A DNA stretch of 51,922 nucleotides from Dendrobates tinctorius (taxonomy: Eukaryota), in NCBI RefSeq assembly GCF_039654945.1, contig NW_027361798.1, positions 3,360,079-3,412,000 of the forward strand, given 5' to 3'. Positions 14,442 to 51,921 of this stretch are shown here, piece after piece. Each line of letters begins with the position of its first letter. Within the stretch, counting starts at the first letter, position 1. Under the pieces are notes generated by a model. It had not been told where the DNA came from. It was given only the letters and a program-made list of their open reading frames with translations, and made no database searches. A program made the position numbers and the translations under genes.

Positions 14442-17400
14442 AAAATAATTAAGTAACATCTAAGTGCAATATCCTTTAAGTTTTTTTCCATAATTTTATA
14501 TTTAAGCAATAGTTAAGTAAAGATAACTGGAGCCTATTTGGCGGTACTACCGAAAAGTGGTACTTTTAGTTTTAATAAGTTTATGGTTAATAAATGGGTT
14601 TTTTTTGCATCTGATTTGGTGTAATCTCTTTTAATACATTCCTATGAAGGTCACTGACTACTTCTATAGTCCTGAAATTGAAATATGTAGCTACTATAGG
14701 TGGTTTTCTGACCTGTGCTTGTCAGGCACATTGCGCATGAACTGAGGAGAATCTATATTGCGCCTGACGGAGGGTTAAGGTGCGTCAAAGTTTGCATGAG
14801 CAGACGCATAAGTGGGATGCTCATGCTTAGGATGGCGTCGTCTGCGCTTACCAGCCGTGTGCATTCCTCAAAACACTGAAGGACTTTACAGAGGTCATTC
14901 AGCTTCGACCACTGCACGCCTGTCAACTCCATGTCTGCTCTCAAAGTGCCTGGCCGTGTATCCTCCCACAAATGCATTATGGCCTGCCTCTGCTCGCACA
15001 GCCGCTCCACCATGTGCAGGGTGGAGTTCCACCTTGTTGCAATGTCGATAATGAGGCGGTGGTTGGGAAGGTGGAGCAATCGCTGCAGCTTCTGCATACG
15101 AACGGAGTGTACAGGCGACCGGCGGATGTGCGCGCACAGTCTTCGCACCTTATGGAGCAGGGCTGTTAACTCCGGATAATTAGTGAGGAAGCACTGCACC
15201 ACCAGGTTCAAGGTGTGAGCCAAGCAAGGTATGTGGCTGAGTTTTGAAAGGGCTATGGCTGCCACAAAATTACGGCCGTTATCACTAACTACCTTGCCTG
15301 CCTCAAGATGTATACTGCCCAGCCATGACTCAGTTTGTCGCTTCAAGTACTCGGCCAGCACCTCGGCGGTGTGTCTGTCGCCCAAACACATCATCTGCAA
15401 CACAGCCTGCTGACGCTTTCCACTAGCTGCTCGATAGGGGGACACATCGTGTGCAACAGTGGCAGCTGCAGATGGAGTGCTTGTACGACTGCGCTCTGTG
15501 GACGAGCTTTCGCTTCTGGAGGAGGAGGAGGAAGAGGAGGAGGGTCGAACGCCTACAGCCAACTGTTTCCTATACCGTGGGCTAGGCAGCACTGTCCCAC
15601 CACCGCTATCCCCTGTGGACCCTGCATCCACCACATTAACCCAGTGCGCAGTGATGGACACGTAACGGCCCTGGCCATGCCGACTGGACCATGCATCAGT
15701 TGTGAGGTGCACCTTTCCGCTCATTGACTGCTTGAGTGCATGGACAATGCGGTCTTTCACATGATGGTGGAGGGCTGGGATAGCTTTGCGAGAGAAGAAG
15801 TGGCGACTGGGTAGGTCATAGCGTGGTACTGCATAGGCCATGAGTTCGCGGAAAGCTATGCTTTCCACCAACCGAAAGGGCATCATCTCAAACGAGATTA
15901 GTTTGGCAATGTGGGCGTTCAAACCCAGTGTACGCGGATGAGAGACTGAGTACTTTCTTGACCTACTCATAGTGTCTGGGAGGGTGAGCTGGACTTGAGA
16001 GCTGCATATGGTGGAAGTAGCGGTGGACAGGGCGGACTGAGAGAGGGTTGATGATGGTGATGGAGTTGGTGTTCTTTCTGATGGCCTAGAATCAGTCTTT
16101 CGTTGATATAACAGTGGGATTCCCTGACTGCTGTGGTCTTGCAACGACACCTCAACATTTGCTGCTGTGCTAACCGGTGGGCTTACAGTGGGGGAAACAA
16201 TGTAGCGTTGCTGACTACCTTCGTTGTGATCAGTTGCACATGGGGCACTTGAGGTTTGGTGTTGTGTCCACACTTGCAAGTGCATGCTGGTTAAGTGTCT
16301 AAGCATGCAACTGATATTCAAATTTTTCAGATTTTTCCCTCGGCTAAAGGTCTTTGCGCACTTCTTACAGATAACCTTGGCCTGATCATGAGGATTTTGT
16401 TCAAAAAAGTGCCACACTGCACTCTTCCTACTTTGGCAGACATTTTGCGGCCTAGCACGCTGTGATCTTTTGACCCTCTGGACAAGCTGTCCAGCAACTC
16501 TTTTGATGTTTGGAACCTGTCTTTGGAGTGCTCCGGGCCTGCCAGATAACAGCTGTGGCGATGTCGATGTCTGCTGTGGATGCTCCTCATCTGAGCTATT
16601 GGAAGCAGCACCCTCTTCCCCCAATGGATGCCAATCTGGGTCAACAACTGGGTCATCCATCACCTCCTCTTCTATGTCATGTGCACCTTCCTCTGTGTCA
16701 CCGTGTATGGTGGTATAGTGTGCGGGAAGGGGCACCTGAGTCTCATCATGGTCAGAATCTGGCTCTGCACACTGCGAGGACAATGTAGTGCTCTGAGTGA
16801 ATGTACCAGCAGAATCATCCATCAGCGGCTGTGCATCAGTGCACTCCATGTCAGATTCATCTTGGCCTGGGTAATTCACCATTTCACTTGATAATCCAGG
16901 CATGGTATGTGAAAACAGCTCCATGGAGTAATCAGTAGTATGGCCTGCGTCATCCTTCAATCTTGGTTGGGGTGAAGGACACAAGGAAAGGTGTGGTTCA
17001 TGAACATGAGCCTCCAATGACGACTCAGTGCTTTTACTTTTTACAACTGAAGAAGAGGAGGCGATAGAGCTGGAGGCTGAGTCAGCAATGTAAGACAAAA
17101 CTTTTTCCTGATGCTCTGGCTTTAAAAGCGGTTTGCCAACTCTTAGAAAACTAAGCGTTCGAGGCCTTATGTAGCCAGACGATGACGCAGGGTCAGCACC
17201 TCCTGCATTCGGTCCTATTTTGCTCTTGCCACTACCATCAGATCCACCACCAACACCATCATTACCAGCTGCCAACCCCCGCCCAATTCCACGGCCTCTT
17301 CCACCAGCCTTCCTCATTTTTGGTAGAAATGTAGACAAAATCCAACAAACTATATAGTAATGTAAAACAAGGTAAAAGGTGTCTATAGGACAGGGGAGAT

Positions 17401-17632
17401 TTTGAATTTCTGCAGACACTTGTGGACACTGGACACTTTTGGATTGTGTGAGGCCCACTGATATCTGAGCGCTATGTGACAGGCTCGATGGCACAGCTGT
17501 GACAAAAGTGACTAGAGGATAAGGGAGATTGGATTGCTTTTAAAAAAGCAGTTTGCGGAGCAGTGGGTAAACAGCAATGCAGGAATGTCAGGAAGCCTTA
17601 GAAGGCAGCCCAACAACCAACACCACTGATAC

Positions 17633-19015
17633 TGTTCCTATCTTCAAAAAGGGGAAGAAGGTGGACCCAGGCAACTATAGGCCGGTGAGTCTGACTTCTA
17701 TACCAGGAAAGATCTTTGAACAAATTATTAAACAACATGTATGTCAATACCTGGATAAGAATGAAGTGATTAAACAGAGTCAGCATGGGTTTGTAACTAA
17801 TAAGTCATGTCAGACTAATTTAATTTCCTTCTATGATGGTATTACTGATTGGGTGGATCAAGGAAATGCTGTAGATATAGTATATCTTGACTTCAGCAAA
17901 GCATTTGACAAAGTCTCTCATACAATCCTTATTGAAAAAATGACTAAGTATGGAATGGACAAGGCAACTGTTAGGTGGATTCATAACTGGCTTAGTGATC
18001 GGACCCAAAGAGTGGTCGTAAATGGCTGCACATCCAGTTGGAAGAATGTCTCAAGTGGGGTACCACAGGGCTCTGTCCTGGGCCCTGTATTGTTCAACAT
18101 CTTTATCAACGATTTAGATGAAGGAATTGAGGGTAAACTGATTAAATTTGCTGATGACACAAAGCTAGGAGGGATAGCTAATACTAGAGAAGAGAGAGAG
18201 AGGATTCAAAAAGATTTAAATAAACTGGAGAAGTGGGCAGCAACTAACAGAATGGTTTTTAACAGGGAGAAATGCAAAGTACTACATCTGGGCAATAAAA
18301 ATGAAAAAAGCATATATAGAATGGGAGGAATAGGGCTAAGTGACAGCACATGTGAAAAAGACTTGGGTATACTAATAGATCACAGACTGAATATGAGTCA
18401 ACAGTGTGATGCAGCAGCAAAAAAGGCAAATGCAATTCTAGGATGTATTAACAGAAGCATACAGTTTAGATCACGTGAAGTAATTATTTCCCTCTACTCC
18501 TCTTTGGTCAGACCTCATCTGGAATATTGTGTCCAATTTTGGGCACCACATTTTAAAAAAGACATCAACAAACTGGAGCAAGTTCAGAAAAGAGCGACCA
18601 GAATGGTGACCGGTCTGCAAACCCTGTCTTATGAGGAAAGGTTGCAGGATTTGGGAATGTTTAGTTTGCAAAAGAGAAGACTGAGAGGAGACTTAATAGC
18701 TGTCTACAAATATCTAAAGGGCTGTCACATTGTAGAAGGATCAACTTTATTCTCATTTGCACAAGGAAAGACTAGAAGCAATGGGATGAAACTGAATGGG
18801 AGGAGACACAGATTAGATATTAGAAAAAACTTTTTGACAGTTAGAGTGATCAATGAGTGGAACAGGCTGCCACGAGAAGTGGTGAGTTCTCCTTCAATGG
18901 AAGTCTTCAAACAGAGGCTGGACAGACATCTAACTGGGATGATTTAGCGAATCCTGCTTTGAGCAGGGGGTTGGACCAGATGGCCCAGGAGGTCCCTTCC
19001 AACTCTACGATTATA
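17633..19015 (+). mobile_element. CR1 copy 2, 5'-truncated, RT frame open to 18947, inserted in the hAT-B upstream repeat
   Basis: Near-identical to copy 1; TGATAC on both sides (17627-17632, 19016-19021); uninterrupted site visible in the sister repeat at about 19681-19720. Confidence 0.96.
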
Positions 19016-19195
19016 TGATACACCACTATATAGCCTCCCCTTGCACTGCACACACAGTGACTGGTGTGTTGTGCAGGCCAAATTGCTAGCAGCAGAAGCA
19101 GTTTTTTTTTCTTCTCAGCAGGACAAAAAAAAAAAATTGGGATTGCTTTTAAAAAAGCAGTTTGCGGAGCAGTGGGTAAACAGCAATGCAGGAAT

Positions 19196-19261
19196 ACAGA
19201 AAGCAAAAAACACAAATATCCTGAACTAAAAGTAAAAAATATACTGCAAATAATGCATAAA

Positions 19262-19311
<50 letters not shown>

Positions 19312-19427
19312 GGGTATTTAGTAAACATAATTTTGATCAAAATAATGTACAAGCCATCCCGCCACGTCACGGCAACCCTTGTGGGCTTGTACATTATTTT
19401 GATCAAAATTATGTTTACTAAATACCC

Positions 19428-19489
<62 letters not shown>

Positions 19490-19641
19490 TTTATGCATTA
19501 TTTGCAGTATATTTTTTACTTTTAGTTCAGGATATTTGTGTTTTTTGCTTTCTGTTTTCTCTGGTTAATGGTCATGTGTTAAAATGCACTTACATTGTGC
19601 ATACACATTAACTTACTTGTCTCAGTTCAGATTTGTTTTTT
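19196..19641. mobile_element. 446-bp foldback insertion with (AAT)n-containing arms and a 14-bp TSD; possibly Penelope-like
   Basis: Arms 19196-19355 and 19384-19555; flanking direct repeat AGCAATGCAGGAAT at 19182-19195 and 19642-19655; family assignment is inference. Confidence 0.7.
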
Positions 19642-20152
19642 AGCAATGCAGGAATGTCAGGAAGCCTTAGAAGGCAGCCCAACAACCAACACCACTGATA
19701 CACCACTATATAGCCTCCCCTTGCACTGCACACACAGTGACTGGTGTGTTGTGCAGGCCAAATCGCTAGCAGCAAAAGCAGTTTTTTGTCTTCTTCCCTG
19801 CCTAACGCTCTCCCTACAGAATCAGCAGCAACCTCTCCCTATACTAAGATCGGCAGAAGTAAGATGGCGGTCGGCGTGCACGCCCTTTTATACCCCCTGT
19901 GACGCCCACCAAAGCAAGCCAATCACTTGCATGCCCTTCTGAAAGATGGTGGTGACCCGTGCCTATGTCATCACGTTGCCCACAGTGTCCGTGGATCCTG
20001 ATTGGCTGAAAAAGAGCGCAAAACAAACTTTTGAAACGTGACTTTGGCGCGTAAGTCGCCGACCTCGTGGCCGACCTCATCCTAGGGTCGGGTTTCGTTT
20101 CATGAAAAGTCGGCGACTTTTGAATTTTTTCGACCCGTTTCGCTCAACTCTA
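19642..20152 (-). mobile_element. hAT copy B 5' terminal region with TIR and promoter-like motifs
   Basis: TAGAGTTGAGCGA terminus on the minus strand; TATAAAAG on the minus strand near 19886-19893; AAGATGGCG YY1-like motif; CCAAT boxes. Confidence 0.8.
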
Positions 20153-23100
20153 CCGGTCACCATTCTGGTCGCTCTTTTCTGAACTTGCTCCAGTTTGTTG
20201 ATGTCTTTTTTAAAATGTGGTGCCCAAAACTGGACACAATATTCCAGATGAGGTCTGACCAAAGAGGAGTAGAGGGAAATAATGACTTCACGTGATCTAG
20301 ACTGTATGCTTCTGTTAATACATCCTAGAATTGCATTTGCCTTTTTTGCTGCTGCATCACACTGTTGACTCACATTCAGTCTGTGATCTATTAGTATACC
20401 CAAGTCTTTTTCACATGTGCTGTTGCTTAGCCCTATTCCTCCCATTTTGTATATGCTTTTTTCATTTTTATTGCCCAGATGTAGTACTTTGCATTTCTCC
20501 CTGTTAAAAACCATTCTGTTAGTCGCTGCCCACTTCTCCAGTTTATTTAAATCTTTTTGAATCCTCTCTCTCTTCTCTAGTATTAGCTATCCCTCCTAGC
20601 TTTGTGTCATCAGCAAATTTAACCAGTTTACCCTCAATTCCTTCATCTAAATCGTTGATAAAGATGTTGAACAATACAGGGCCCAGGACAAAGCCCTGTG
20701 GTACCCCACTTGAGACATTCTTCCAACTGGATGTGCAGCCATTTACGACCACTCTTTGGGTCCGATCACTAAGCCAGTTATGAATCCACCTAACAGTTGC
20801 CTTGTCCATTCCATACTTAGTCATTTTTTCAATAAGGATTGTATGAGATACTTTGTCAAATGCTTTGCTGAAGTCAAGATATACTGTATCTACAGCATTT
20901 CCTTGATCCACCCAATCAGTGATTCCGTCATAGAAGGAAATTAAGTTAGTCTGACATGACTTATTAGTTACAAACCCATGCTGACTGTTACGACGGCGGA
21001 ACACGCTTAAAAAAATATAAATAAACGTGTTCGCCGCCCGGGGTCCACCGTGCGGCAGGTGAAATAACCGCTGCTAAAATGGCAGAACACAGGGACGATA
21101 ATGTGCACAAGGTTTAACTGCACCTGGTGCACAAAAGTAGCTCTGTTGAGGTCACAGAGCTGCACATGAAAAGTAATGCAGAAGCAGGCTGTTTCACAGA
21201 CAGAGCTGCAAACAAAACAAAAATACAAAGAACGCCGAGTCTGTATCAGCTTCACAGACCATCAGCGGCACACGTGCGGTAGTCAGGGATCGGAGTAGTT
21301 CAAGACAACACTACAACCGGATAGATTTACCGTGGCAGACCGTGTGCACGGCGTCGCAACTGCGGACGCCAAAAGCGACTGCAAGCGCGAATTTAACAGG
21401 CGCAATGCAGAACGCTGGCCGCTGTAACGAATGATGCTTGAGCGCGCTGGCGCTAGCGCAATACTGGCTGTCCCAATCACTCACACAAACGTAATATCCG
21501 AGGGAAGGGGTTTCATAATAAGTCATTCTCCAGACCAAGCATCCATCACCAAGCACACAGCAGCAAGTATAGAAAATACTAGCGCATGGCATAGCGGCCA
21601 TGCGCACTTTTTATAGCGTACGGGACCTGCCGGAAATCTCCAGAGCCCCGAGCATAACCAATCAAATCAGGAGCAGGACCTGAGCACCTGACTCCTGAAC
21701 TCCAGTGAGAGCTCGTCCCGAGAGCATGCTCAGTAGCAGGGAAAAAGGACTTAGCCTCTGGAGACAAATGTGAGAATCTGGGTTGCTGCATAAGCATAGA
21801 CTGACCCAGATTCCTAACACTGACTCTGTTTAATCACTTCATTCTTATCCAGGTACTGACATACATGTTGTTTAATAATTTGTTCAAAGATCTTTCCTGG
21901 TATAGAAGTCAGACTCACCGGCCTATAGTTGCCTGGGTCCACCTTCTTCCCCTTTTTGAAGATAGGAACAACATTTGCTCTTCTCCAGTCTTCTCCTGTT
22001 CTCCAAGAATTTTCAAAGATTATGGAGAGGGGTTCAAAAATTTCTCCTGCTATCTCCTTCAGTACTCTAGGGTGTAATTCATCTGGACCTGGAGACTTGA
22101 ATTCATTTAGGTTAGCTAAGTGTTTCCTCACTATCTTTCTGTTTATAGATATCCCGGATTCTTCTATTCCCTTAATAGGAGAGTGAAGAACCGTTGATGT
22201 TACATTTACTTTCTGAGAGAAAACAGAGGCAAAATGGGAATTTAAAAGTTCGGCCTTCTCAACATCCTGTCTTACCATTTCATCATTTTCATCCTGTAAA
22301 AATCCTATAGCATCTTTGGCTTTTCTTTTACGTTTCACATATCACCAAAATCCTTTATTATTGCTTTTGACGTCTCTTGAAAGCCTCAATTCATTGTCAG
22401 CTTTAGATAATCTGATTTGTGCCCTGCAGGTTCTGCAGACAGCATTATATTCTTCTTTAGATATGCCTCCCTCTTTCCATTTTATAAACATTTCTTTCTT
22501 CCTTTTTAGCATGTGCTTAAGTTCTGTGTTCACCCATCCTGGTTTCCTTAAATGTTTCCTATTCTTCCCTCTTTTCGGAATTGTTAACAATTGTTCTTTG
22601 AGAAATTCATTTTTCAAGATTTCCCATCCTTCCTGGACATTTTTGTCTTTAAGGATATCCAGCCATTGGATCCCTCCAATTCTCTTTCTGAATCCCTTAA
22701 AATCTGCCTTTCTGAAATCTAACCTTGACGTCTGAGTCTTCACAGGTCTTCCTCCTCTAGTTATCCAAAATTCTAAAATAGCATGGTCGCTACCTCCTAG
22801 GGTCCCAGCCACTTTTACCTCCTCAACCATTTCCTCCCTGTTTATAAGGATTAGATCCAAGGTTGCAGTTCCCCTTGTTTTCTCCCCTACCTTTTGGAAG
22901 ATAAAGTTGTCAGCAAGAGAAGATAAGAATTTCCTTGACCTGTTAGTTTTGCCTGAGAGAGATTCCCAACAAATGTCTGGATAGTTGAAATCTCCCATGA
23001 CAACTATGTCATATTTTTTGGAGAACTTGGCCATTTGATGCATAAAGAGTTCATCCATATCTTCAGCTTGCACAGGCGGCCTGTAGTAAATGCCTACAAT

Positions 23101-23192
23101 GGTGTCCTTTCCATTGTTCTGTCCTTGTATTCTTACCCAAACAGTTTCCACAGAACTCCCAGTCTCTGAAGCTTCAATCTCTGTGCAGATAT
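20153..23192 (-). mobile_element. CR1 copy 3, degenerate ORF2 (part of the APE endonuclease and RT), split by a solo LTR and cut at its 3' side by hAT-B
   Basis: GIYYRPP, GDFN, SDH and FADD motifs; stop near 22342, frameshift near 20565, 9-bp deletion near 21990. Confidence 0.95.
20986..21819 (-). mobile_element. Gypsy-type solo LTR, 834 bp
   Basis: TGTTA...TAACA ends; 5-bp TSD CTGAC (20981-20985, 21820-21824); TATA box on the minus strand. Confidence 0.92.
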
Positions 23193-25495
23193 ACCAGAGG
23201 AATTTACTCACTGTTCCAAGCACTAATAGAGGATTATACCCACTATGTCATGAACTAATAGAGCATTATATTCACTGTGCTAGGAGGCACTAATAGAACT
23301 TGGCACAGTGGGTATAATCCTCTGGTATTAGTGCTTGAGACAGTGGGAACAATCTGCTATTAGTGCTTGGCACAGTCGTTATAATCCTCTATTAGTGCTT
23401 GGCACAGTGGGTATAATCCTCTATTAGTGCCTGGCACAATGGGCATAATCCTCTGGTATTAGTGCTTGGCACAGTGGGTATAATCTGCTATTAGAGGATT
23501 ATACCCACTGTGCCAAGTTCTAATAGTGCTTGGCACAGTGGGTAGAATCTGCTATTAGTGCTTGGCACAGTGGGTATAATCTGCTATTAGAGGATTATAC
23601 CCACTGTGCCAAGTTCTAATACCAGAGGATTATGCCCATTGTGCCAGGCACTAATAGAGGATTATACCCACTGTGCCAAGCACTAATAGTACATGGCACA
23701 GTCGTTATAATCCTCTATTAGTGCTTGGCACAATGGGCATAATCCTCTGGTATTAGTGCTTGACACAGTGGGTATAATCTGCTAATACCAGAGGATTATG
23801 CCCATTGTGCCAGACACTAATAGAGGATTATACCCACTGTGCCAAACACTAATAGAGGATTATAACGACTGTGCCATGTACTATTAGTGCTTCACACAGT
23901 GGGTATAATCCTCTATTAGTGCCTGGCACAATGGGCATAATCCTCTGGTATTAGTGCTTGGCACAGTGGGTATAATCTGCTATTAGAACTTGGAACAGTG
24001 GGTATAATCCTCTAATAGCAGATTATACCCACTGTGCCAAGCACTAATACCAGAGGATTATGCCCATTGTGCCAGGCACTAATAGAGGATTATACCCACT
24101 GTGCCAAGTACTAATAGCAAATTATACCCATTGTCTCAAGCACTAATACAGGATTATACACACTGTGCCAAGCACTAATAGAGGATTATGCCCACTGTGC
24201 CATGTACTAATAGTGCTTGAGACAGTGGGAACAATCTGCTAATTCCAGAGGATTATATTCAGTGCCAAGCACTAATAGAGGATTATACCCATTGAGCCAA
24301 GCACTAATAGCAGATTATACCCACTGTGCCAAGTATTAATGGCAGATTATACCCACTGTCTCAAGCACTAATAGAGGATTATACCCATTGAGCCAAGCAC
24401 TAAGAGAAGATTATACCCACTGTGCCAAGTATTAATGGCAGATTATACCCACTGTCTCAAGCACTAATTCTAGAGGATTATATACACTGTGCCAAGCACT
24501 AATAAATCATTATATTCACTATGCCAAGTACTAATAGAGGATTTTAGCCAATGTACCAAGCACTAATAGAGGATTATACCCACTATGCCAAGCACTAATA
24601 GAGGATTATACCCACTGTCTCAAGCACTAATTCCAGAGGATTATATTCACTGTGTCAAGGACTAATACCAGCGGATAATACCCGCTGTGCCAAGCACTAA
24701 TTCAGGGATATATTCACTGTGGCAAGCACTAATAGAGTATTATACCCACTGTGCTAGGAGGCACTAATAAAGGATTATACCCACTGTGCCAAGAACTAAT
24801 AGCAGATTATACCCACTGTCTCAAGCACTGATTCCAGACGATTACATTCACTGTGTCAAGCACTAACAGAGGGATATATCCACTGTGCCAAGCACTAATA
24901 GTGCCTTGCACAGTGGGTATAATCCTCTATTAGAGGATTATGCCCACTGTGCCAAGCACTATTAGTGCTTGGAGGCACAGTGGGTATAATCCCCTATTAG
25001 TGCTTGACACAGTGGGTATAATCCTCTATTAGTGCTTGGAACAGTGAGTAAAATCCTCTGGTATTAGTGCCTTGCACAGTGGGTATAATCCTCTATTAGT
25101 GCTTGGCATAGTGGGTATAATCCTCTAATACCAGAGGATTTTACTCACTATTCCAAGCACTAATAGGGGATTATACCCACTGCCTCAAGCACTAATTCCA
25201 GAGAATTATATTCACTGTGCCAAGGACTAATACCAGCGGATAATACCCGCTGTTCCAAGCACTAATTCAGGGTAATATTCACTGTGCCAAGCACTAATAG
25301 GGTATTATTATTATTCCCACTGTGCCAAGCACTAATAGAGGATTATACCCACTGTGCCAAGCACTAATAGAGGATTATACCCACTGTGCCAAGCACTAAT
25401 AGAGGATTATACCCACTATGCCAAGCACTAATAGGGGATTATACCCACTGTGCCAGGCACTAATAGAGGATTATACCCACTGTGCCAGGCACTCA
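23192..25495. repeat. 32-bp satellite (TGTGCCAAGCACTAATAGAGGATTATACCCAC; 35-bp variants) in mixed orientation
   Basis: Period 32 visible at 25321-25490; reverse-complement blocks interleaved. Confidence 0.95.
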
Positions 25496-25849: not shown

Positions 25850-26164
<315 letters not shown>

Positions 26165-26212: not shown

Positions 26213-27742
26213 GCCCACATCTCACGTGAGAGGCTGCAATTCCCGCTGGGGTCTAGCGGTCGCTGCTGGTGTGATCGCCGGGACCGGCTTGTGACGTTGC
26301 GCATTGGGGGAGACGTTCTCTCTTCTGGAGCTGATCCAGTGAGTAGTCTCAGTGTGAGGTGGGGCACAGATGATCCGGGTGTATGGGGGAATCGATCGGC
26401 CGCACAGTCACCTCCTATGATGCTGCAGTTACTACAGAGCAGAAATCCGAGTGCTGGTAATAAATGTGGTTGTGCCACGTCTCCTGCTGCTGAGATCCTG
26501 TGGGTTGTAGGATGGCTGCGAGGAGTGGAATGCGGCTGCACTGATGAATGGACGCCGGTGTGAACGCTCCTGAGCAGCGGCTCAGGATTGGGGTATCAAC
26601 AGGATACCTACATGCGATGAGAGGGGCTGTCTGTGTTTCTGCGCCACCACATGGGCAGGGAGGGACGGTGCAGGAATACAGGGTCGCTCTGCCTGTGATC
26701 AGGAGAACATCTGCCCACATCACACTTTGCACCAATCACCGGATCTAAATCCCGGAGCAAATTATCATATACAGGAATATACCCACTGTGCCAACTGCTA
26801 TAGCAGGAATTATATCCACTGAGTCACCCACTAGAGACATATATAGAGGATTATACCCACTGCTCTGTCACCAGGTCCCAACTCTACAGTAACGTCATCC
26901 GAGATGTGTGGAAAGGAATCAATGACCCCAACTATGGAACCACAGCTCTGCCCCTAGTGCCGGCGCCTCCAACAGAGACCAGGAGGAGGTCGCTGCTCTC
27001 TATGGAGCTGCCCCGGGCTCAGTGGGTCCCTGTGATCTCGGGACTCGATGTCGCAGCCCGGGCGGCTCTCTTCCTCCGGACACACTGCGGTCCTGGCTGC
27101 GGCCTCCTCTCTCGGTGCTGCCCCTGTCTTCAGCCCCTGGAGCTCGCACCGCTGTTTGCACTTTCTGATCTATTCTGGGGTTGAGCCTTGTAACAGGGTG
27201 TATGGGCGCTATATCCGGACACAGACCCCTCTGTGCACAGTACAGAGCTCGGAGTGCTGCTGTGAGATGAAGGGAAGGTAACGGCGGCGGCCGATCAGGG
27301 GAGCGATCAGCAGCTCCGGGGAGCAGGACTCTGTGCTCTGCGGGTGCAGCTGCCCCAGACCGGACGGCTCACGTCACAGCGATCTCCGCTACTAAGCAGA
27401 GGGGCCGGGAATAATCCGAAGGACAGGAAAGGGATTGAGCGGGAAATTCAAAACCATCAACGGGTCTGTGATCAGCCAATGAGAGAAGTCCGCAGGCGCG
27501 ACCAATCCCAGAGCCAGGTATGGACTCCTCCGGTTAACTCCTTAGTGACCGTGCGCTGCTCAATTCCCCCTTCTGTATGAGGCTGCATGGAAGCAGGAAC
27601 AGAACCGCTGGATCTACCGATAACGGAACCGGCCAGAATAACGGCCCTCAGACAACTGTGGACTAAGCAGCCCAGATATTACCGAACCAGGAGGAAGGAA
27701 GGAGAAATGGCAGGAAGGAGCTCATCTGTGGGAGGATTTGGT

Positions 27743-27758
27743 GGCTCTGAGAAGAGCC
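27743..27758 (-). terminator. Histone 3' stem-loop (H3 copy 1)
   Basis: GGCTCT TCTC AGAGCC ACCA followed by a GATGAGCT downstream element. Confidence 0.95.
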
Positions 27759-27787
27759 TTTGTGTTGTGGTTGGTGCTCGGGAATAT

Positions 27788-28315
<528 letters not shown>

Positions 28316-28617: not shown

Positions 28618-31600
28618 CTGCAGAGGAGGCACTGATCATACAGCTCTGCAGTGAGGAGGTGGCACTGATCATACAGCTCTGCAGGGAGGAGGTGGTGGCA
28701 CTGATCATACAGCTCTGCAGGGAGGAGGTGGTGGCACTGATCATACAGCTCTGCAGGGAGGAGGTGGCACTGATCATACAGCTCTGCAGGGAGGAGGTGG
28801 CACTGATCATACAGCTCTGCAGGGAGGAGGTGGCACTGATCATACAGCTCTGCAGTGAGGAGGTGGTACTGATCATACAGCTCTGCAGGGAGGAGGTGGC
28901 ACTGATCATACAGCTCTGCAGGGAGGAGGTGGTGGCACTGATCATACAGCTCTGCAGGGAGGAGGTGGTGGCACTGATCATACAGCTCTGCAGGGAGGAG
29001 GTGGCAGTGATCATACAGCTCTGCAGGGAGGAGGTGGTAGTGATCATACAGCTCTGCAGGGAGGAGGTGGCACTGATCATTCAGCTCTGCAGGGAGGAGG
29101 TGGAGGAACTGATCATACAGCTCTGCAGCAAGGAGATGATGGCACTGATCATACAACTCTGCAGGGAGGAGGTGGTGGCACTTATCATTCAGCTCTGCAG
29201 GGAGGAGGTGGTGGCACTGATCATACAGCTCTGCAGCGAGGAGGTGATGGCACTGATCATACAGCCCTGCAGCAAGGAGATGATGGCACTGATCATATAG
29301 CCCTGCAGCAAGGAGATGATGGCACTGATCATACAGCCCTGCAGCGAGGAGATGATGGCACTGATCATACAGCCCTGCAGCGAGGAGGTGATGGCACTGA
29401 TCATACAGCCCTGCACCGAGGAGGTGGCAGTGATTATACAGCTCTGCAGGGAGGAGGTGGTGGCACTTATCATACAGCTCTGCAGGGAGGAGGTGGTAGT
29501 GATCATACAGCTCTGCAGGGAGGAGGTGGCACTGATCATTCAGCTCTGCAGGGAGGAGGTGGAGGAACTGATCATACAGCTCTGCAGCAAGGATATGATG
29601 GCACTGATCATACAACTCTGCAGGGAGGAGGTGGTGGCACTTATCATTCAGCTCTGCAGGGAGGAGGTGGTGGCACTGATCATACAGCTCTGCAGCGAGG
29701 AGGTGATGGCACTGATCATACAGCCCTGCAGCAAGGAGATGATGGCACTGATCATATAGCCCTGCAGCAAGGAGATGATGGCACTGATCATACAGCCCTG
29801 CAGCAAGGAGATGATGGCACTGATCATACAGCCCTGCAGCGAGGAGGTGATGGCACTGATCATACAGCCCTGCACCGAGGAGGTGGCAGTGATTATACAG
29901 CTCTGCAGGGAGGAGGTGGTGGCACTTATCATACAGCTCTGCAGGGAGGAGGTGGTAGTGATCATACAGCTCTGCAGGGAGGAGGTGGCACTGATCATTC
30001 AGCTCTGCAGGGAGGAGGTGGTGGCACTGATCATACAGCTCTGCAGGGAGGAGGAGGAGGCACTGATCATACAGCTCTGCAGGGAGGAGGTGGTGGCACT
30101 TATCATTCAGCTCTGCAGGGAGGAGGTGGTGGCACTGATCATACAGCTCTGCAGGGAGGAGGTGGTGGCACTTATCATTCAGCTCTGCAGGGAGGAGGAG
30201 GAGGCACTGATCATACAGCCCTGTAGGGAGGAGGTGGAGGCACTGATCATACAGCTCTGCAGGGAGGAGGTGGTGGCACTGATCATACAGCTCTGCAGGG
30301 AGGAGGAGGAGGCACTGATCATACAGCTCTGCAGGGAGGAGGTGGTGGCACTTATCATTCAGCTCTGCAGGGAGGAGGTGGTGGCACTGATCATACAGCT
30401 CTGCAGGGAGGAGGAGGAGGCACTGATCATACAGCCCTGCAGGGAGGAGGTGGAGGCACTGATCATACAGCCCTGCAGCGAGGAGGTGATGGCACTGATC
30501 ATACAGCTCTGCAGCGAGGAGGTGGCAGTGATTATACAGCTCTGCAGGGAGGTGATGGCACTGATCATACAGCTCTGCAGGGAGGAGGTGGTGACACTGA
30601 TCATACAGCTCTGCAGGGAGGAGGTGGTGGCACTGATCATACAGCTCTGCAGGGAGGAGGTGGTGGCACTGATCATACAGCTCTGCAGGGAGGAGGTGGT
30701 GGCACTGATCATACAGCTCTGCAGGGAGGAGGTGGTGGCACTGATCATACAGCTCTGCAGGGAGGAGGAGGAGGCACTGATCATACAGCTCTGCAGGGAG
30801 GAGGTGGTGGCACTTATCATTCAGCTCTGCAGGGAGGAGGTGGTGGCACTGATCATACAGCTCTGCAGGGAGGAGGAGGAGGCACTGATCATACAGCCCT
30901 GTAGGGAGGAGGTGGAGGCACTGATCATACAGCCCTGCAGGGAGGAGGTGGAGGCACTGATCATACAGCCCTGCAGCGAGGAGGTGATGGCACTGATCAT
31001 ACAGCCCTGCAGCGAGGAGGTGATGGCACTGATCATACAGCTCTGCAGCGAGGAGGTGGCAGTGATTATACAGCTCTGCAGGGAGGTGATGGCACTGATC
31101 ATACAGCTCTGCAGCGAGGAGGTGATGGCACTGATCATACAGCCCTGCAGCGAGGAGATGATGGCACTGATCATACAGCCCTGCAGCGAGGAGGTGGAGG
31201 CACTGATCATACAGCCCTGCAGCGAGGAGGTGGAGGCACTGATCATACAGCCCTGCAGCGAGGAGGTGGCAGTGATTATACAGCTCTGCAGGGAGGAGGT
31301 GGTGGCACTTATCATTCAGCTCTGCAGGGAGGAGGTGGTGGCACTGATCATACAGCCCTGCAGGGAGGAGGTGGAGGCACTGATCATACAGCTCTGCAGG
31401 GAGGAGGTGGTGGCACTGATCATACAGCTCTGCAGCGAGGAGGTGATGGCACTGATCATACAGCTCTGCAGGGAGGAGGTGGAGGCACTGATCATACAGC
31501 TCTGCAGGGAGGAGGTGGTGGCACTGATCATACAGCTCTGCAGCGAGGAGGTGATGGCACTGATCATACAGCCCTGCAGCGAGGAGGAGATGACACTGAT

Positions 31601-32122
31601 CATACAGCTCTGCAGCGAGGAGGTGGCAGTGATTATACAGCTCTGCAGGGAGGTGGCACTGATCATACAGCCCTGCAGGGAGGAGGTGGAGGCACTGATC
31701 ATACAGCTCTGCAGCGAGGAGGTGGCAGTGATCATACAGCTCTGCAGGGAGGTGATGGCACTGATCATACAGCTCTGCAGGGAGGAGGTGGTGGCACTGA
31801 TCATACAGCTCTGCAGGGAGGAGGTGATGGCACGGATCATACAGCTCTGCAGGGAGGAGGTGGTGGCTCTGATCATACAGCTCTGCAGGGAGGAGGTGGT
31901 GGCACTGATCATACAGCTCTGCAGGGAGGAGGTGGTGGCAGTGATCATACAGCTCTGCAGCGAGGAGGTGATGGCACTGATCATACAGCCCTGCAGCGAG
32001 GAGGTGGCAGTGATTATACAGCTCTGCAGGGAGGAGGTGGTGGCACTGATCATACAGCTCTGCAGGGAGGAGGTGGTGGCAGTGATCATACAGCTCTGCA
32101 GTGAGGAGGTGGTGGCTCTGAT
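28618..32122 (-). repeat. 33/36-bp tandem array (about 100 units) derived from the H1 3'-processing signal
   Basis: Minus-strand unit ATCAGTGCCACCACCTCCTCCCTGCAGAGCTGTATG is continuous with the H1 stem-loop 3' arm ATCAGAGCC-ACCAC. Confidence 0.95.
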
Positions 32123-34047: not shown

Positions 34048-34118
34048 CACTAATAGAGGATTATACCCACTGTGCCAAGCACTAATACCAGAGGATTTTA
34101 CCCACTGTGCCAACCACT
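34048..34118 (+). repeat. Two units of the 32-bp satellite
   Basis: GCACTAATAGAGGATTATACCCACTGTGCCAA. Confidence 0.9.
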
Positions 34119-35507: not shown

Positions 35508-38500
35508 ATGAAGAAGGCAGGGAGTAAGGCACGTGGTCGTGGAGTTTCAGCAGGGAGAGGACGGGGGGATTCGGTGTCTGCTGCGGCCACCAGTGACCCG
35601 GCATCCCCCAGTTTTAGCAGGCAACAGTCCTTTATGCGCAGCTTTTTAGGACCTCGCCATACCCCACTGCTGCGGGACGAACAAACTGAAGCAGTTGTCG
35701 GATGGATGGCAGCTAATGCATTGAATTCAATGACTTCCACGTCCTCTCAGGGCCAGAGCACCGAAGAGCAACTATCTGTCTCTTCACCACCTGCCAAATT
35801 GCCCAGGCAGTCAGAGAGCCCTGGACAGGAGCCATCTCAATCTTTACTTCTGTTCTCAGAATCTGTTGGCTTGGAAAGAGGTGGCCAGCCAAGCAGCATT
35901 CTAGAGCGTGAAGAAGAGGGAGTATGCAGTGATGCGCAACTGCTTTGTCCCTCTGAATCTGAAGAGGCGGGTGGGCCAGTGCCTATGGTCAGCACACCTC
36001 AGTACGCATCAGATGATGATAAGACTCAGGTGACACTTTCTGGTGCGTACGGTGCTGGCGAGACAACCCAGGACCAGCCGGTGCTTGAAGAGGGGAGTGG
36101 AGATGATGAGGTCCTTGACCCATCATGGCGTGAGGAACAGGAAGGTGGTGGGAGCAGCTCTGAGGAAGAGATTCCCTGAACGGCCAAGACAGGAGGGAGA
36201 GGGAGGGGGCAGACTTGGTTGCCTGTAGCCTCCACTTCGGCACCCGTTAGGAGCATTCCTCTTCCAAAACCCAAAACGGGCGCTCCCAAGACTTGCAGTG
36301 CGTGGTCCTTTTTTGACACAGTTGTAGATGACATTTGCTTTGTCAAATGCAAGCTGTGTCATCAGAAAGTCAAAAGAGGGAAAAGTGTCAGCAACCTCAA
36401 TACCACAAAAATGTGGAAACATGTGCGGACCAAGCACGAGCTGGAGTTACACAGACACACTGAAGACGTAGGCCAACCTACAGCACCACCTACCACCTCT
36501 TCAGCTCATGTTGGGGCCTCTTCCTCCAGCTCACACACAGCTGGTTCGGCTTCCTCACAGGATCGCCAAGGAAGAACCTCTGGCACTGTTGTCCGGACAC
36601 CCTGTGACATTCCACCCACAGCACCACGTTCCCTGTCATCCTCACTCCCAGGCCACTCTACAGCCATCGGTCGCACAGGCATGGGAGAAAAGGCGGCCAT
36701 ACTCCGCAAACCATCCCCGAGCACAGGCTCTGAATGCTGGCATTGCCAAACTACTGGCCCTTGAAATGCTCTCATTCAGGCTGGTGGAGACTGACACCTT
36801 CCGGAACTTCATGGCATTGGCAGTCCCACAATACACTGTGCCCAGCCGCTTTGATTTCAGCAGGCGAGCCGTCACTGCCCTGCAAAAACATGTGGAGGGA
36901 AAAATAAAACATGCTCTACTAAACGCCGTCAGTAGCAAGGTCCACCTGACCACCGATGCGTGGACCAGTAACCATGGACAGGGACGATACCTTTCCCTCA
37001 CTGCCCATTGGGTCAATGTTGTGGAGCCGGGTACAGATCTGGAGAGTGGCGCTGTACGTGTTCTGCCAACTCCACGGATTGCAGGAATCCAGTCTGTACA
37101 CATAGACTCCTCATCCTACTCAAGTTCCTCTGAAACAGCGCAGCAGGAGCCTGTTACGACCGATATGAGCACAGCCGTGGCCAAACATCAACAGGCCGTA
37201 CTGAAATTAATTTCTTTGGGGAATCGAAGCCACACAGCGCAGGAGCTCTGGAATGCCATCAAGCAGGAGAGCGATGTGTGGTTTGTGCCAGCGAATCTCC
37301 AGCCAGCAGGCTGGGTAGTGTGTGACAATGGCCGAAATCTGGTGGCAGCTCTGGGCCTAGGCAACCTCACTCACATCCCATGTCTGGCACATGTGCTCAG
37401 CTTGGTCGTGCAGAGTTTTCTGAGGGACTATCCGGATCTTGATGCACTGCTGCACAAGGTCCGCATAGAGTGCGCTCACTTGCGTCGTTCCAGCACGGCA
37501 AGATCGCGCCTTGCTGCTCTGCAGCGCCAATTACGCCTTCCGGAACATCACATCATATGTGACCTACCCACCAGGTGGAATTCAACGTTACATATGTTGG
37601 AGCGGTTGTGTGAGCAGCAGGCAGCAGTCATGGAGTACCAGCTGCATCAGGCGCAAACAAGTCGCACTGTGCGCCGGTCACACTTCACCACCACTGAGTG
37701 GACCTCTATGAAGGACATCTGCTTCGTTTTGCGTGCCTTCGATGATTCCACGCGGATGGCGAGTGCAGACGATGCACTAGTCAGCATGACTGTCCCCCTT
37801 ATCTGCATGCTTCAAAAAACACTGCAAGCACAAAGGGAGGAGGTTCTGGAAGAGGTGGAGGATGAGGAGTCCCAAATGCCATCTGCTTCTGGACAGTCTG
37901 CGCTACGTGGTTCCTCACAAAGGCCTAGGCAGGGGACACTTTGTGAGGAGGATGAGGAGGAGTCGATGGAGGAGGAAGACATCTCTCCACAGGAGGGAGG
38001 TACACAAAGCTCTAATCAGTATGTACAGCGAGGGTGGGGTGATGCAGAGCAGGCAGAGATGACGACTCAAGCAGGGGACAGCGGTTCTTGGGCAGTTGGG
38101 AGTCTGCAGCACATGGTTGACTTCATGCTGCAGTACCTGAGAAACGACCGCCGCATCGCCCATATTCTCAACACAGCTGATTATTGGGTGTACACCCTCC
38201 TAGATCCTCGCTACTGGGACAACTTACAAAGCCTCACCGTTGAACTGGGAGCGTAAAATGTACCAAGACACACTGGTGCAGTCCATCATGTTCTCCATTC
38301 CAACCGACAGCACTGCTGCTAGTGCTTTACAAAGCAGCTCTGTGCATCGAGGCAGTGGAGGAAGCTCTGCACAGAGGGAGCAGAGGCAGCGCCTCAGCAT
38401 AAGGCAAGACCACTATGGCCCAAATGAGTCAAAGTTTTGAGTGCCCGCCACAAATGTCTACACCATCACAGATGGCTCCAGTCAGTAGGAGGCAACGTTT

Positions 38501-38798
38501 CCGTCAGATGGTGACAGACTACTTGTCTTGCCCTCTCAGTGTACTCCCAGACGGCTCTTCCCCTGTCAATTTTTGGATCTCTAAGCTGGATACATGGCCA
38601 GAGCTTAGCCAGTATGCATTGGAGGTGCTGGCTTGCCCTGCTGCCAGTGTATTATCGAAACGCGTCTTTAGTGCAGCAGGTGGTGTACTAACAGACCGTC
38701 GCACGCGACTATCCTTCGATAACGTTGACCGGCTTACTTTTCTGAAAATGAACAAGGCCTGGATCTCACCGGAATTTGCCAGTCCTCTTCCAGAATAA
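35508..38798 (+). pseudogene. hAT transposase pseudogene (BED, DDE and dimerization domains)
   Basis: SAWSFF..CKLC..H..H, LTTDAW, VCDNG, CLAH, TRWNST and CPAASVLSKRVFS motifs; in-frame TGA at 36177, frameshifts, catalytic E replaced by K. Confidence 0.93.
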
Positions 38799-41353: not shown

Positions 41354-43636
41354 TAGTGTTGAGCATTCCGATACCGCAAGTATCGGGTATCGGCCGATAC
41401 TTGCTGTATCGGAATTCCGATACCGACTTCCGATATTTTTTCAATATCGGAATTCGGCATCGGAATCGGAAGTTCAAAGTTGATTGACAGACTGACGTCA
41501 TCATGATGCGCGGTGTGTGCGCATCATGATGCGCCGTCATTTCGGGCCTTCTGGGGGTCTCTGCCGGCCTGCCGGGGGGCTGTGCCGGCCTGCCGGGGGG
41601 CTGTGTGGACTGCCCGGGGTCTCTGCCGGCCTGCCGGGGGGCTGTGCCGGCCTGCCGGTGGTCTGTGCACCCTGTGGGGGTCTGTACCGGCCTGCCGGGG
41701 GGCTGTGCCGGCCTGCCGGGGGGCTGTGCTGATGTCCGGGGGTCTGTGCAAGCATCGTCCGATGGGACTACAAGTCCCATCGGGCGATGCCTGCTACCAT
41801 GACAGTGATTGACACATTAGCCAATGATGGGACAGTAGTAGTCCCATCATCCGGCTAATGTGTTAAATGTTAAAAAAAAAAAAAATACTACATACATACT
41901 ACATGCATGCTACATACATACTACATGCTACATACATACTACATATATACTACATACATGCTACATACATACTACATGCTACATACATACTACATGCATA
42001 CTACATACATACTACATGCATACTACATACATACTACATGCATGCTACATACATACTACATATGTGTGGGAATTTCCCACACAGCAATGGCATAAAGTGA
42101 GACTAGGGACTTTTTTTTTTTTTAAGTGGCGGAGGAATACAGTGCGGAAGGATACCTACCTTCCGTCATTGGATTCCTGCAGCCCGTAGAGAACGGCAGC
42201 ATCATCTGATGCTGCCGTTCTCTACCCAAGATCGTCGTGGGACACACTCGTGGACTGCTTCGGATCGTGGGTGAGTATTTTTGTGGTTTGTTATGTTAAT
42301 ATTTATTCCGGAAAGACAATGGCTTCGGGGAACAATGTGACAAGTATTGGTAAGTATGTTACTCTATGTTATATGTACTGTATGTCTATGTATGTATTGT
42401 ATGAATGTATTGTATGTATGTAGTATATATGTGGTATGTATGTAGCATGTAGTATGTATGTAGCATGTAGTATGTAGCATGCATGTAGTATATATGTAGT
42501 ATGTATGTAGCATGTAGTATGTATGTAGTATGTATGTAGTATGTATGTAGTATGTATGTAGTATGCATGTAGTATATATGTAGTATGTATGTAGCATGTA
42601 GTATGTATGTAGCATGCATGTAGTATGTATATGGTATGTATGTAGCATGTAGTATGTATGTAGCATGCAGTATGTATGTAGTATATATGTAGTATGTATG
42701 TAGCATGCAGTATGTATGTAGTATATATGTAGTATGTATGTAGCATGTAGTATGTATGTAGTATGTATGTAGCATGCATGTAGCATGCAGTATGTATGTA
42801 GCATGCATGTAGTATATATGTAGTATGTATGTAGCATGTAGTATGTAGCATGCATGTAGTATATATGTAGTATGTAGCATGTAGTATGTATGTAGCATGC
42901 ATGTAGTATATATGTGTTATGTATGTAGCATGTAGTATGTATGTAGCATGCATGTAGTATATATGTGGTATGTATGTAGCATGCAGTATGTATGTAGCAT
43001 GCATGTAGTATATATGTAGTATGTATGTTGCATGTAGTATGAATGTAGCATGTATGTAGTATGCATGTTGTATGTATGTAGCATGTAATTTTTTTTTTTT
43101 TTTTTTTACATTTAACACATTAGCCGGATGATGGGACTACTACTGTCCCATCATTGGCTAATGTGTCAATCACTGTCATGGTAGCAGGCATCGCCCGATG
43201 GGACTTGTAGTCCCATCGGACGATGCCTGCACAGACCCCCGGAGCCTGCACAGCCCCCCGGCAGGCCGGCACAGCCCCCCGGCAGGCCGGCACAGCCCCC
43301 CGGAGCCTGCACAGCCCCCCGGCAGGCCGGCACAGCCCCCCGGCAGGCCGGCACAGCCCCCCGGAGCCTGCACAGACCACCGGCAGGCCGGCACAGACCA
43401 CCGGAGCCTGCACAGACCCCCTGGCAGGCCGGCACAGCCCCCCGAAAGGCCCGTACAGACCCCAGAGAGGCTGTACAAGGGCAGGAAAGGGTTTTTCTTA
43501 TTCCGATACCGGAAGTCCCATAGACTTGAATGGGACTTCCGGTATCGGAATCGGCGATACCGATACTTTTTTTAAAGATCGGCCGATACCATCCGATACG
43601 ATACTTTGAAGTATCGGACGGTATCGCTCAACTCTA
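41354..43636. mobile_element. Non-autonomous hAT element, 2283 bp, with long internal inverted arms, inserted in gag
   Basis: TIRs TAGTGTTGAGC / GCTCAACTCTA; exact 8-bp TSD GTTGCCAC (41346-41353, 43637-43644). Confidence 0.95.
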
Positions 43637-44696: not shown

Positions 44697-46059
44697 CATT
44701 TGCTGTGGGTGGTGTACAACTTAAATTTCTTCTGGCAATTACTCTGATCTGCTCCCTGTCCACATTTTCCGCTAAGGCTTTTGTGGATTCAGGAGCGGCT
44801 CTGAACCTGATGGACTTGGATTTTGCTAAACGTTGTGGGTTTCCTATGACACCTCTGCGGACGCCTATCCCTTTGAGGGGGATTGATGCTACTCCTTTGG
44901 CGAAGAATAAACCTCAGTTTTGGACCCAGGTGGTAATGCGGGTCGCCCCAGACCATCAAGAAAATTGCAGATTTTTGGTGTTGCATAATTTGCATGATAC
45001 CATTGTTCTGGGATTTCCCTGGTTGCAAATCCGTAATCCAGTTTTGGATTGGAAATCTGTGTCTGTGGTGAGTTGGGGTTGTCGGTGTGCTCTTGGTGAC
45101 GCTCCTGTTTTCTCCACCTCTCCCCAGTTGCATGATGTTCCTGACTATTTGGCTGATTATTATGATGTATTTAGTGAGAATGAGTCTGCGTCTTTGCCTC
45201 CTCATGGGAGTTATGACTGTGCAATTTAGCTGAGCCCTGGGTGTAAATTTCCCAAGGGTCGACTTTTCATTTTATCCGTACCCGAGCACGAGGCTATGCG
45301 ATCTTATATTAAGGAGTCGTTGGGGAAGGGTCATATTAGACCATCCTCTTCACCCTTGGGTGCTGGATTATTTTCGTGGCCAAGAAAGATGGTTCATTAA
45401 GGCCTTGTATTGATTATCGTGCCCTCAACAAAATTACTATTAAATATCAGTATCCGTTACCCCTGATTTCTGATCTATTCTCCAAAGTTAAAGGTGCTTG
45501 CTGGTTTACCAAGCTTGACCTCAGGGGGGCGTATAATCTTATTCGCATTAAGCAGGGGGATGAATGGAAGACGGCGTTTAATACTCCGGAGGGACATTTT
45601 GAGTACCTGGTGATGCCTTTTGGGCTCACTAATGCCCCTTCTGTCTTCCAGTGCTTCATGAACGATATATTCCGAGACTTTGTGGATAAATTTTTGATCA
45701 TCTATCTGGATGATATTTTGATCTTTTCCAGGGATTGGGATTCTCATGTGGAACATGTTCAGACTATGTTCCAGATTTTGAGGGAGAATTCCCTGTATGT
45801 TAAGGGATCGAAATGCCTTTTTGGTGTACAGAGGATTTCATTTTTGGGATTTATTTTGTCTCTGTCAACTATTGAAATGGACCCAGCCAAGGTACAGGCC
45901 ATTTATGATTGGGTTCAGCCCACTTCTTTGAAGGCCCTCCAGAAGTTTTTGGGTTTTGCTAATTTTTATCTTAAATTCATAGCTAATTTTTCTGGTATTG
46001 CCAAACCATTGACTGATTTGACTAAGAAGGGTGCTGAATTGGTCTCCAGAGGCTGTTTC

Positions 46060-51501: not shown

Positions 51502-51921
<420 letters not shown>

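Follow-up and report, generated by a model that had tools for sequence, protein, structure and literature searches.

The window analysed here is a stretch of 51,922 nucleotides from the frog Dendrobates tinctorius (NCBI RefSeq assembly GCF_039654945.1, contig NW_027361798.1, forward strand 3,360,079 to 3,412,000), within which positions are counted from the first nucleotide. Between the truncated end of a long interspersed nuclear element (LINE) and a histone H4 gene it holds a minisatellite of about 70 units of 32 bp, whose units lie in either orientation and change strand 14 times, in every case inside a 7-nt quasi-palindrome, the core, that forms part of each unit. A reading made earlier from the letters alone (the sequence-only reading) had set the array about 350 bp upstream of H4, which is correct, as it ends about 355 bp before the ATG at 25853. 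The locus is composed as follows.

19428 to 23190, minus strand: 5′-truncated LINE, the left bound of the array (Pfam: reverse transcriptase 20543-21004, APE endonuclease 22342-23223)
23192 to 25495, both orientations: minisatellite, about 70 units of 32 bp (period 32 by Tandem Repeats Finder, TRF, and both-strand scan for unit bodies)
23290 to 24245, both orientations: main switching zone, 29 units, 10 of the 14 switches (body scan, switch map)
24246 to 24895, plus strand: 20 units, all forward and without a switch, higher-order period 96-99 bp (TRF, body scan)
24895 to 25131, both orientations: second switching zone, four switches with core centres at 24898, 24930, 24962 and 25128 (body scan, switch map)
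25853 to 26164, plus strand: histone H4 gene, downstream of the array at a distance of about 355 bp (Pfam)

Unit structure and orientation switches

The unit consists of a 25-nt body, AGGATTATACCCACTGTGCCAAGCA in the forward sense, and the 7-nt core CTA(A/T)TAG, which reads CTAATAG in forward units and CTATTAG in reverse units and is self-reverse-complementary apart from its middle base. Units are 32 bp long, or 35 bp where an extra CCA follows the core, and bodies are spaced at 32, 35 or 38 bp. Bodies were mapped by scanning both strands with a 21-nt probe taken from outside the palindromic part of the unit; it located 69 of them in 23200-25489, to which one unit at 24249 with a 2-bp deletion is to be added. 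TRF gave the period of 32 together with higher-order periods of 96-198 bp that span switches. The 70 units are thus repeated contiguously at a conserved period, as in any minisatellite, but they lack its uniform head-to-tail orientation, 48 being forward and 22 reverse. Any two of them share about 80% identity (mean 6.04 mismatches per 31). Units of the main switching zone are nearest to the consensus, with 1.62 mismatches per 21-nt body, and the uniform part of the array is decayed, with 2-5 mismatches per 21 nt. Rfam returned no match at the gathering threshold over the whole window, and the consensus unit was without a match in an exact-match metagenome scan.

The array is divided by the 14 switches into 15 orientation blocks, which from left to right hold +3, -6, +1, -2, +3, -3, +3, -4, +6, -1, +20, -1, +1, -5 and +11 units (plus, forward; minus, reverse). 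Forward-to-reverse switches have their core centres at 23293, 23523, 23686, 23884, 24210, 24898 and 24962, and reverse-to-forward switches at 23491, 23587, 23785, 24015, 24242, 24930 and 25128. These centres agree within a few bases with the 14 positions listed in the sequence-only reading, and its further claim, that switches are restricted to CTAATAG/CTATTAG or to CTAATAC/CTAATTC and leave the register intact, holds for all 14. Each lies inside the core, either as CTA(A/T)TAG or as one of the variants CTAATAC and CTAATTC, which are those ahead of 35-bp units; the 32/35-bp register is kept at every switch, and no truncated unit was seen. Four blocks, with bodies at 23497, 24216, 24904 and 24936, consist of a single unit, and that such blocks exist had also been noted from the sequence. 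Three of the four are contained in the following two features.

23492 to 23522, plus strand: lone forward cassette within a reverse run, the reverse complement (24/25) of cassette 23988-24012 in a paralogous block
24899 to 24961, both orientations: two neighbouring single-unit blocks, reverse then forward (body scan, switch map)

If each unit were oriented independently, 30.2 +/- 3.6 switches would be predicted against the 14 seen, and orientation is therefore blocky. The middle base of the junction core is of the left-hand type in eight junctions and of the right-hand type in six; because it varies in this way there is no fixed cut point, and the exchange may have occurred anywhere within the 3-nt arms of the core, an overlap of the size of a microhomology.

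The core is not the only self-complementary site in the unit, which also contains the 7-nt quasi-palindrome CACTGTG, the perfect palindrome TATA and two further 4-nt inverted pairs, GTGC/GCAC with a 3-nt loop and TAAT/ATTA with a 5-nt loop. The strings diagnostic of a switch at CACTGTG, TATA, GTGCnnnGCAC or TAAT/ATTA occur zero times, the nearest approximations having 4-5 mismatches. Under equal use of the core and CACTGTG, the chance that the core alone would be used ranges from about 6% to less than 1% for some four to eight independent formations, an estimate that is suggestive, not decisive. A sharp question follows for any mechanism, in that one 7-nt quasi-palindrome is used and an equally long one 11 nt away never is. 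The unit also contains the heptamer CACAGTG, and joining of the V(D)J type was considered and rejected, as none of the junctions is at the heptamer. Two other arrays in the window serve as controls, one of 99 units of 36 bp at 28628-32122 that holds TGATCA and CTGCAG, and one of 46 units of 30 bp at 1608-2970 that holds CGCGCG; in both the orientation is uniform.

Palindromes, an inverted cassette and copied junctions

Several segments of the array are related to one another by inversion or by duplication, and the most informative of them are listed here.

23876 to 23987, minus strand: left arm of the youngest palindrome, three reverse units, 96% complementary to 24011-24122
23988 to 24010, minus strand: single-copy spacer of the youngest palindrome, one unit body between two cores (predicted hairpin loop)
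24011 to 24122, plus strand: right arm of the youngest palindrome, three forward units (arm comparison, folding)
23782 to 23954, both orientations: second palindrome, one unit as spacer between arms 23782-23855 and 23881-23954 (95%)
24211 to 24241, minus strand: single cassette inverted in place, a GTCTCAAG-type unit with its usual neighbours on either side
23389 to 23495, minus strand: paralogous block A, 105/107 positions shared with block B, up to and including the core
23881 to 23987, minus strand: paralogous block B, 105/107 positions shared with block A

The axis of the best palindromes runs through a whole unit and not through a core, and their spacers are of 23-25 nt. In the youngest the spacer is 23 nt and the units compared outwards from the axis differ at 0, 0 and 3 of 31 positions; the second has a 25-nt spacer, the unit body 23856-23880, and a third has arms 23389-23526 and 23552-23689 (93%), again around 25 nt. 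Longer core-centred palindromes, with arms of 62-106 nt, reach only 84-90%, near baseline, with the exception of a 42-nt one centred on 24930 that reaches 93%. Since the spacer of the best palindromes is exactly one body between two cores, the partners in a switch appear to be neighbouring cores. Arms of 93-96% complementarity, a single-copy spacer of 23-25 nt and short inverted repeats flanking that spacer are together the features of a fold-back inverted duplication.

As a single strand, the rearranged segment 23870-24128 is predicted to fold into a 259-nt hairpin of -126 kcal/mol (z = -27), in agreement with its earlier description as cruciform-prone. The uniform array folded in the same manner is otherwise unstructured (z = -0.75), and within it the centroid structure predicts one stable element only, the mini-hairpin GTGC-CAA-GCAC, whose end coincides with the first base of the core.

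Besides inverted duplication there is inversion in place, and the sequence-only reading was right to distinguish the two: the arms 23876-23987 and 24011-24122 exemplify the former and the cassette 24211-24241 the latter. In forward runs a GTCTCAAG-type unit is followed by a TTC(C/T)AGAG-headed unit at four places (24441, 24604, 24805 and 25169). The reverse unit at 24216 sits between a CCATG-TA-tailed unit and a TTCCAGAG-headed unit, and when its cassette is flipped in silico the resulting trimer matches the forward places with a score of 69, against 48 unflipped. Judged by these neighbours, one cassette has been inverted in place at 24216; it is identical (31/31) to the cassette at 23334. A segment of tens of nucleotides with inverted repeats abutting both of its breakpoints is what defines a microinversion, and the cassettes, at 25-31 nt, are of this form. 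Blocks A and B provide a further comparison. Past the core that they share, the next two cassettes are opposite in A and B, being reverse complements at 24/25 positions each; in an alternative register the two regions are related by inversion of a two-cassette palindrome centre, the boundaries of which are again cores.

The 14 junctions do not represent 14 events, because blocks that contain junctions have been duplicated both directly and in inverted orientation. With flanks of 19 or 35 nt, the junctions at 23491 and 23587 and the reverse complement of that at 24015 are 96-100% identical, and the junction at 23686 and the reverse complement of that at 23884 are 95-97% identical; the remaining pairs are at a baseline similarity of 79-92%. 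On this basis the junctions collapse to 11 classes, six forward-to-reverse and five reverse-to-forward. Direct duplicates that carry a junction are 23452-23525 and 23548-23621 (98.6%) and 23389-23495 and 23881-23987 (98.1%), and the arms of inverted duplicates measure 138-201 nt at 91-94% identity.

The classes differ in the two bases beside the core, the tails being CA, TA or TT and the heads AG, CA or CCAGAG, and the same tail and head types are also ordinary unit variants away from junctions. Variants adjacent to the core cannot be swapped by exchange outside the junction, which argues for several independent events. Because units are only about 80% identical, old copies are indistinguishable from such events, and the number of independent junction-forming events is put at not less than about four and not more than eleven, figures that are estimated from the junction classes, not measured. 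Unflipping whole blocks does not restore a regular higher-order arrangement, and several alternative histories fit.

Surroundings of the array

The 5′ junction of the LINE lies within a core, where CTA is joined to ATACCAGAG with an ambiguous overlap of 2-3 nt (between 23185 and 23200). This is a single non-homologous joint at the same type of site as the orientation switches. The array was also considered as a repeat-bearing 5′ untranslated region of the LINE, and this was rejected, since the LINE is truncated inside the endonuclease (profile positions 81-225 only) and both a target-site duplication and a remnant of the array are absent from its far side. At its right end the array gives way to unique DNA.

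The 32-bp unit is found in three further places in the window.

26775 to 26870, plus strand: degenerate micro-array, three units, forward only (probe scan)
34050 to 34115, plus strand: micro-array, two units, forward only (probe scan)
48520 to 48640, plus strand: micro-array, about four units, forward only (probe scan)

That these micro-arrays share the flanks of the main array, as parts of a transposable element or a duplicated cluster would, was tested by local BLAST and rejected, the flanks being unrelated.

Two larger palindromes occur in the window. That at 17633-21970 has its centre at about 19375, with arms 17633-19311 and 19440-21970 that are 97-99% complementary; it consists of the 3′ part of the array-adjoining minus-strand LINE repeated in inverted form, each arm ends in (TAA)n (19264-19311 and 19428-19487), and the centre of about 116 bp between the arms is itself palindromic. 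At 41545-43463, two different satellites, of 21 bp (GGCCTGCCGGGGGGCTGTGCC) and 11 bp (ATACTACATAC), recur farther on as reverse complements and in mirrored sequence, and one pair of 151-nt arms (41735-41885 and 43093-43243) has 99% complementarity; the structure may represent either a foldback-type element or a further fold-back duplication.

As regards histone genes, a 207-aa plus-strand open reading frame (ORF) at 27587-28210 has no Pfam match; the minus-strand histone H3 gene at 27788-28198, perfect over its 136 aa, lies antisense within it. No linker-histone ORF was seen just before the 36-bp array at 28628 among the subset of ORFs scanned. A 295-bp spacer segment is present twice at 99% identity, at 26956-27250 and 50697-50991, each copy beside a minus-strand H3 gene (27788-28198 and 51502-51912), and by its sequence looks like a recent partial duplication of a histone cluster unit. 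Mobile-element sequences include a minus-strand ORF of 913 aa with a BED zinc finger (14753-17494), an ORF with a hAT dimerisation domain (38415-38798) and a long terminal repeat (LTR) retroelement series of reverse transcriptase, RNase H and integrase (45376-47955) that ends just before the micro-array at 48520.

Origin of the switches and relation to known systems

Probably the best account of the positions of all the junctions, of boundaries that follow whole cassettes, of spacers one unit long and of copied junctions is that adjacent cores served as short inverted repeats in microinversion or fold-back copying and that tandem duplication came afterwards. Any two cores are inverted repeats of each other, and where they are neighbours the 25-nt body between them would act as the spacer. 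While DNA is replicated or a break is repaired, a growing 3′ end at one core may re-anneal to a neighbouring one, either on the opposite strand or within its own, and then copy in the reverse direction. A switch back at the next core would leave one cassette inverted in place, that is, a microinversion or 'inverted-repeat spacer inversion', and failure to switch back would give an inverted duplication with arms one unit apart; as each of the two jumps ends in a core, the 32-bp register would always be kept. The junctions could afterwards have been multiplied and shuffled by tandem duplication, by unequal exchange and by flip-flop of palindrome centres. Template switching at short inverted repeats, proposed in the sequence-only reading, accordingly remains the best-fitting cause, corrected in that fewer than 14 events are called for and that the partners are neighbouring cores. 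Products of fold-back are common in the vicinity, with the LINE palindrome (17633-21970) and the satellite palindrome (41545-43463) as examples.

Published events are of a comparable scale. Potapova, Kondrashov & Mirkin (2022; PMC8755829) described 59 definite human-chimpanzee microinversions of 17-33 nt, all of them flanked by inverted repeats of 3-75 nt that abut the breakpoints, and in yeast template switching between short inverted repeats inverts their spacers (PMC8604942). The former authors argued that homologous recombination needs far longer repeats and that a site-specific recombinase cannot synapse sites closer than the persistence length of DNA, and weighed two polymerase jumps (template switching) against microhomology-mediated break-induced replication (PMC8755829).

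Several points weigh against this explanation, however. The arms of the core are only 3 nt long, and the same authors doubt that two jumps fit such repeats and prefer the break-induced variant (PMC8755829). CACTGTG is as long as the core, recurs at the same spacing, is richer in GC and would pair more strongly, yet is never used for switching, and as it and the 4-nt inverted matches are left unused, microhomology alone fails to explain why the core is used exclusively. Both control arrays with 6-bp palindromes are unswitched, so that a palindrome within the unit is not sufficient. Moreover, this one assembled sequence is too little to settle the direction or the number of the events. Because equally good or better self-complementary sites are unused and the adjoining palindrome-bearing arrays unswitched, exclusive use of the core might instead reflect an active agent or a built-in stall site, although we regard this as improbable. 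A nuclease or transposase that nicks the AT-rich core, for example one of Harbinger type with a TAA/TTA target, would then be a candidate for the agent, and the GTGC-CAA-GCAC mini-hairpin that abuts the core one for the stall site; that this predicted mini-hairpin could pause synthesis exactly at the core is speculative. Were either the case, the array would be a programmed or still-active hotspot and its orientation would vary among individuals and even tissues.

A founder effect is unlikely, if less readily set aside than the alternatives that follow. On this account there were only one or two inversions, and the other switches were spread by unequal crossing-over, by duplication both tandem and inverted, and by gene conversion; the junctions would lie in cores since any in-place inversion between inverted repeats must have its ends there, which makes the site restriction trivial, although events of the template-switch or microinversion kind would still be the origin. 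In favour of this account, two families of near-identical copies take in five of the 14 junctions, the higher-order TRF periods of 96-198 bp run across switches, orientation is blocky (14 switches against 30 for independent units), and unit identity of about 80% is too low to separate old copies from independent events. There are nonetheless 11 junction classes, at baseline similarity to one another, which differ at core-adjacent bases that unequal exchange outside the junction cannot swap, and the 24216 cassette is flanked by its own usual neighbours. The array could also be an assembly or read artefact, from fold-back chimeric reads or a misassembled repeat, and the window is indeed rich in palindromes. 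A fold-back artefact would, however, give one junction with near-identical arms, in contrast to the 14 in-register junctions with arms that differ by 4-16% found here; units are missing or extra between arms, and rare unit variants occur on both strands in a consistent order. In each of four sequencing runs from the source sample, 52-61% of the 31-mers sampled from the region are present, which argues against an artefact weakly, not being specific to the junctions; runs of other frogs contain 8-20% of the region's sampled words. An artefact is accordingly very unlikely.

An enzyme that cuts or recombines at the core, the other cause entertained in the sequence-only reading, can be given hardly any credence. 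A sequence-specific nuclease, transposase or recombinase would cut CTA(A/T)TAG and the cassettes would be rejoined either way, as might be envisaged for a PIF/Harbinger-type enzyme with a TAA/TTA target. The core is exclusively used though comparable palindromes are present in the unit, the 5′ junction of the flanking LINE is likewise within a core, and PIF elements prefer a CTNAG-type palindrome as target, all of which would suit such an enzyme. Against it, Pfam searches of 26 neighbouring ORFs, a part of those in the window, found no gene for such an enzyme; LINE, hAT, piggyBac and LTR-element ORFs were among those covered, and the domains detected were those of mobile elements and histones (LINE, hAT, BED, LTR-element and histone). 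The search for a longer recognition site around the core found none; TTAA, required by the piggyBac of the window, is present in the array at two places only, 24336 and 24432, neither of them a junction; target-site duplications and footprints are absent at the junctions; and the variable middle base of the junctions leaves no fixed cleavage position. A freed fragment of 25-32 bp would in any case rarely be recaptured, and looping to synapse sites 32 bp apart is physically implausible (an argument of PMC8755829). It is similarly most improbable that the array is a selected structure, whether cruciform-forming or bound by protein independently of orientation, that serves the H4 promoter or a replication origin. 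Its place 355 bp upstream of H4, the small forward arrays of the same unit elsewhere in the cluster and the extreme predicted single-strand folding energy would be in keeping with such a role, but against it stand units that decay (at 2-5 mismatches for every 21 nt of the uniform run), an irregular layout that lacks a conserved dyad, an end cut by the LINE and the absence of any Rfam match. No function of the array is indicated, including in histone expression, and it is probably an ordinary non-coding minisatellite in a histone-cluster spacer, presumably neutral and peculiar only in its unit.

Among known systems, the segments inverted by recombinases (Hin/Gin, shufflons, FLP) resemble the array in having cassettes that lie either way between identical short sites with a symmetric core. 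They differ from it in that the frog site is only 7 nt long and recurs at 32 bp, too close to synapse, in that no recombinase gene was found by the array among the 26 ORFs scanned, and in that the frog array has inverted duplications, which recombinases do not make. In Foldback (FB) transposons the inverted termini are tandem arrays of short repeats, and both they and the frog array thus present short tandem repeats in both orientations. The frog array, however, is without two-armed symmetry, target-site duplication or defined ends, and instead of one centre has 14 switches between 15 irregular blocks, bounded by the LINE junction on the left and unique DNA on the right. Fold-back inverted duplications, or replication U-turns at small inverted repeats, occur in human constitutional rearrangements, in cancer genomes and in fission yeast. 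The likeness lies in arms around a short unique spacer that is flanked by the short inverted repeats that prime the event, and the difference is one of scale, the frog arms being 100-200 bp around a 25-nt spacer and nested repeatedly in one array, against kilobases to megabases.

Microinversions and template-switch mutations (PMC8755829, PMC8604942; Löytynoja & Goldman, 2017, PMC5453318; Walker et al., 2021, PMC7954356) provide the comparison in which the inverted segments agree in size, 25-31 nt here against 17-33 nt reported, and share precise copying and inverted repeats that abut both breakpoints, flanks as short as 3 nt being on record. In the frog, unlike in those cases, the inverted repeats are one periodic quasi-palindrome that offers about 70 potential sites side by side, and the array also has inverted duplications beyond in-place flips. 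The microinversion rate in apes is about 2e-13 per nt per generation genome-wide (PMC8755829), at which 2.3 kb would gain about 0.05 events in 1e8 generations; several events within the 2.3 kb of the array would therefore point to a strong local hotspot, as expected of a wall-to-wall substrate. Microinversions and short template switches are normally regarded as rare, isolated and hard to prove. Here every unit is a ready-made substrate and the products are still legible as single-cassette flips, one-unit-spacer palindromes and copied junctions, so that the array, its orientation maps compared by long reads among haplotypes, individuals and species, could become a natural counter from which the rate of such events and their site rules are read. 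It also indicates that strand switches in short-unit arrays of long-read assemblies can be real biology.

Satellites that change orientation have been described in Tribolium freemani, in which TfSat01 forms kilobase-scale direct and inverted sub-arrays joined through six conserved junction types, the monomers of which are cut short at differing points (bioRxiv 10.1101/2024.12.02.626372, PMC13081366), and strand switches are also known in mouse and human centromeric arrays. The frog array resembles the macro-dyad satellites of Tribolium in its direct and inverted sub-arrays, in the wide propagation of a few conserved junction types and in potential hairpins with short loops (9-27 nt). It differs from them in its unit of 32 bp and blocks of 1-6 units, against 166-bp units and kilobase sub-arrays, in its higher density of switches (14 in 2.3 kb), and in junctions that all fall at one site between untruncated units, whereas those of Tribolium are truncated at six positions. 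Literature searches of incomplete coverage, and hence weak evidence on this point, found no array of short units in which cassettes flip one by one at a quasi-palindrome contained in the unit. Orientation switching inside satellites is already known, and the frog array is distinguished from these precedents by its scale, by the density of its switches and by a single junction site at which no unit is truncated.

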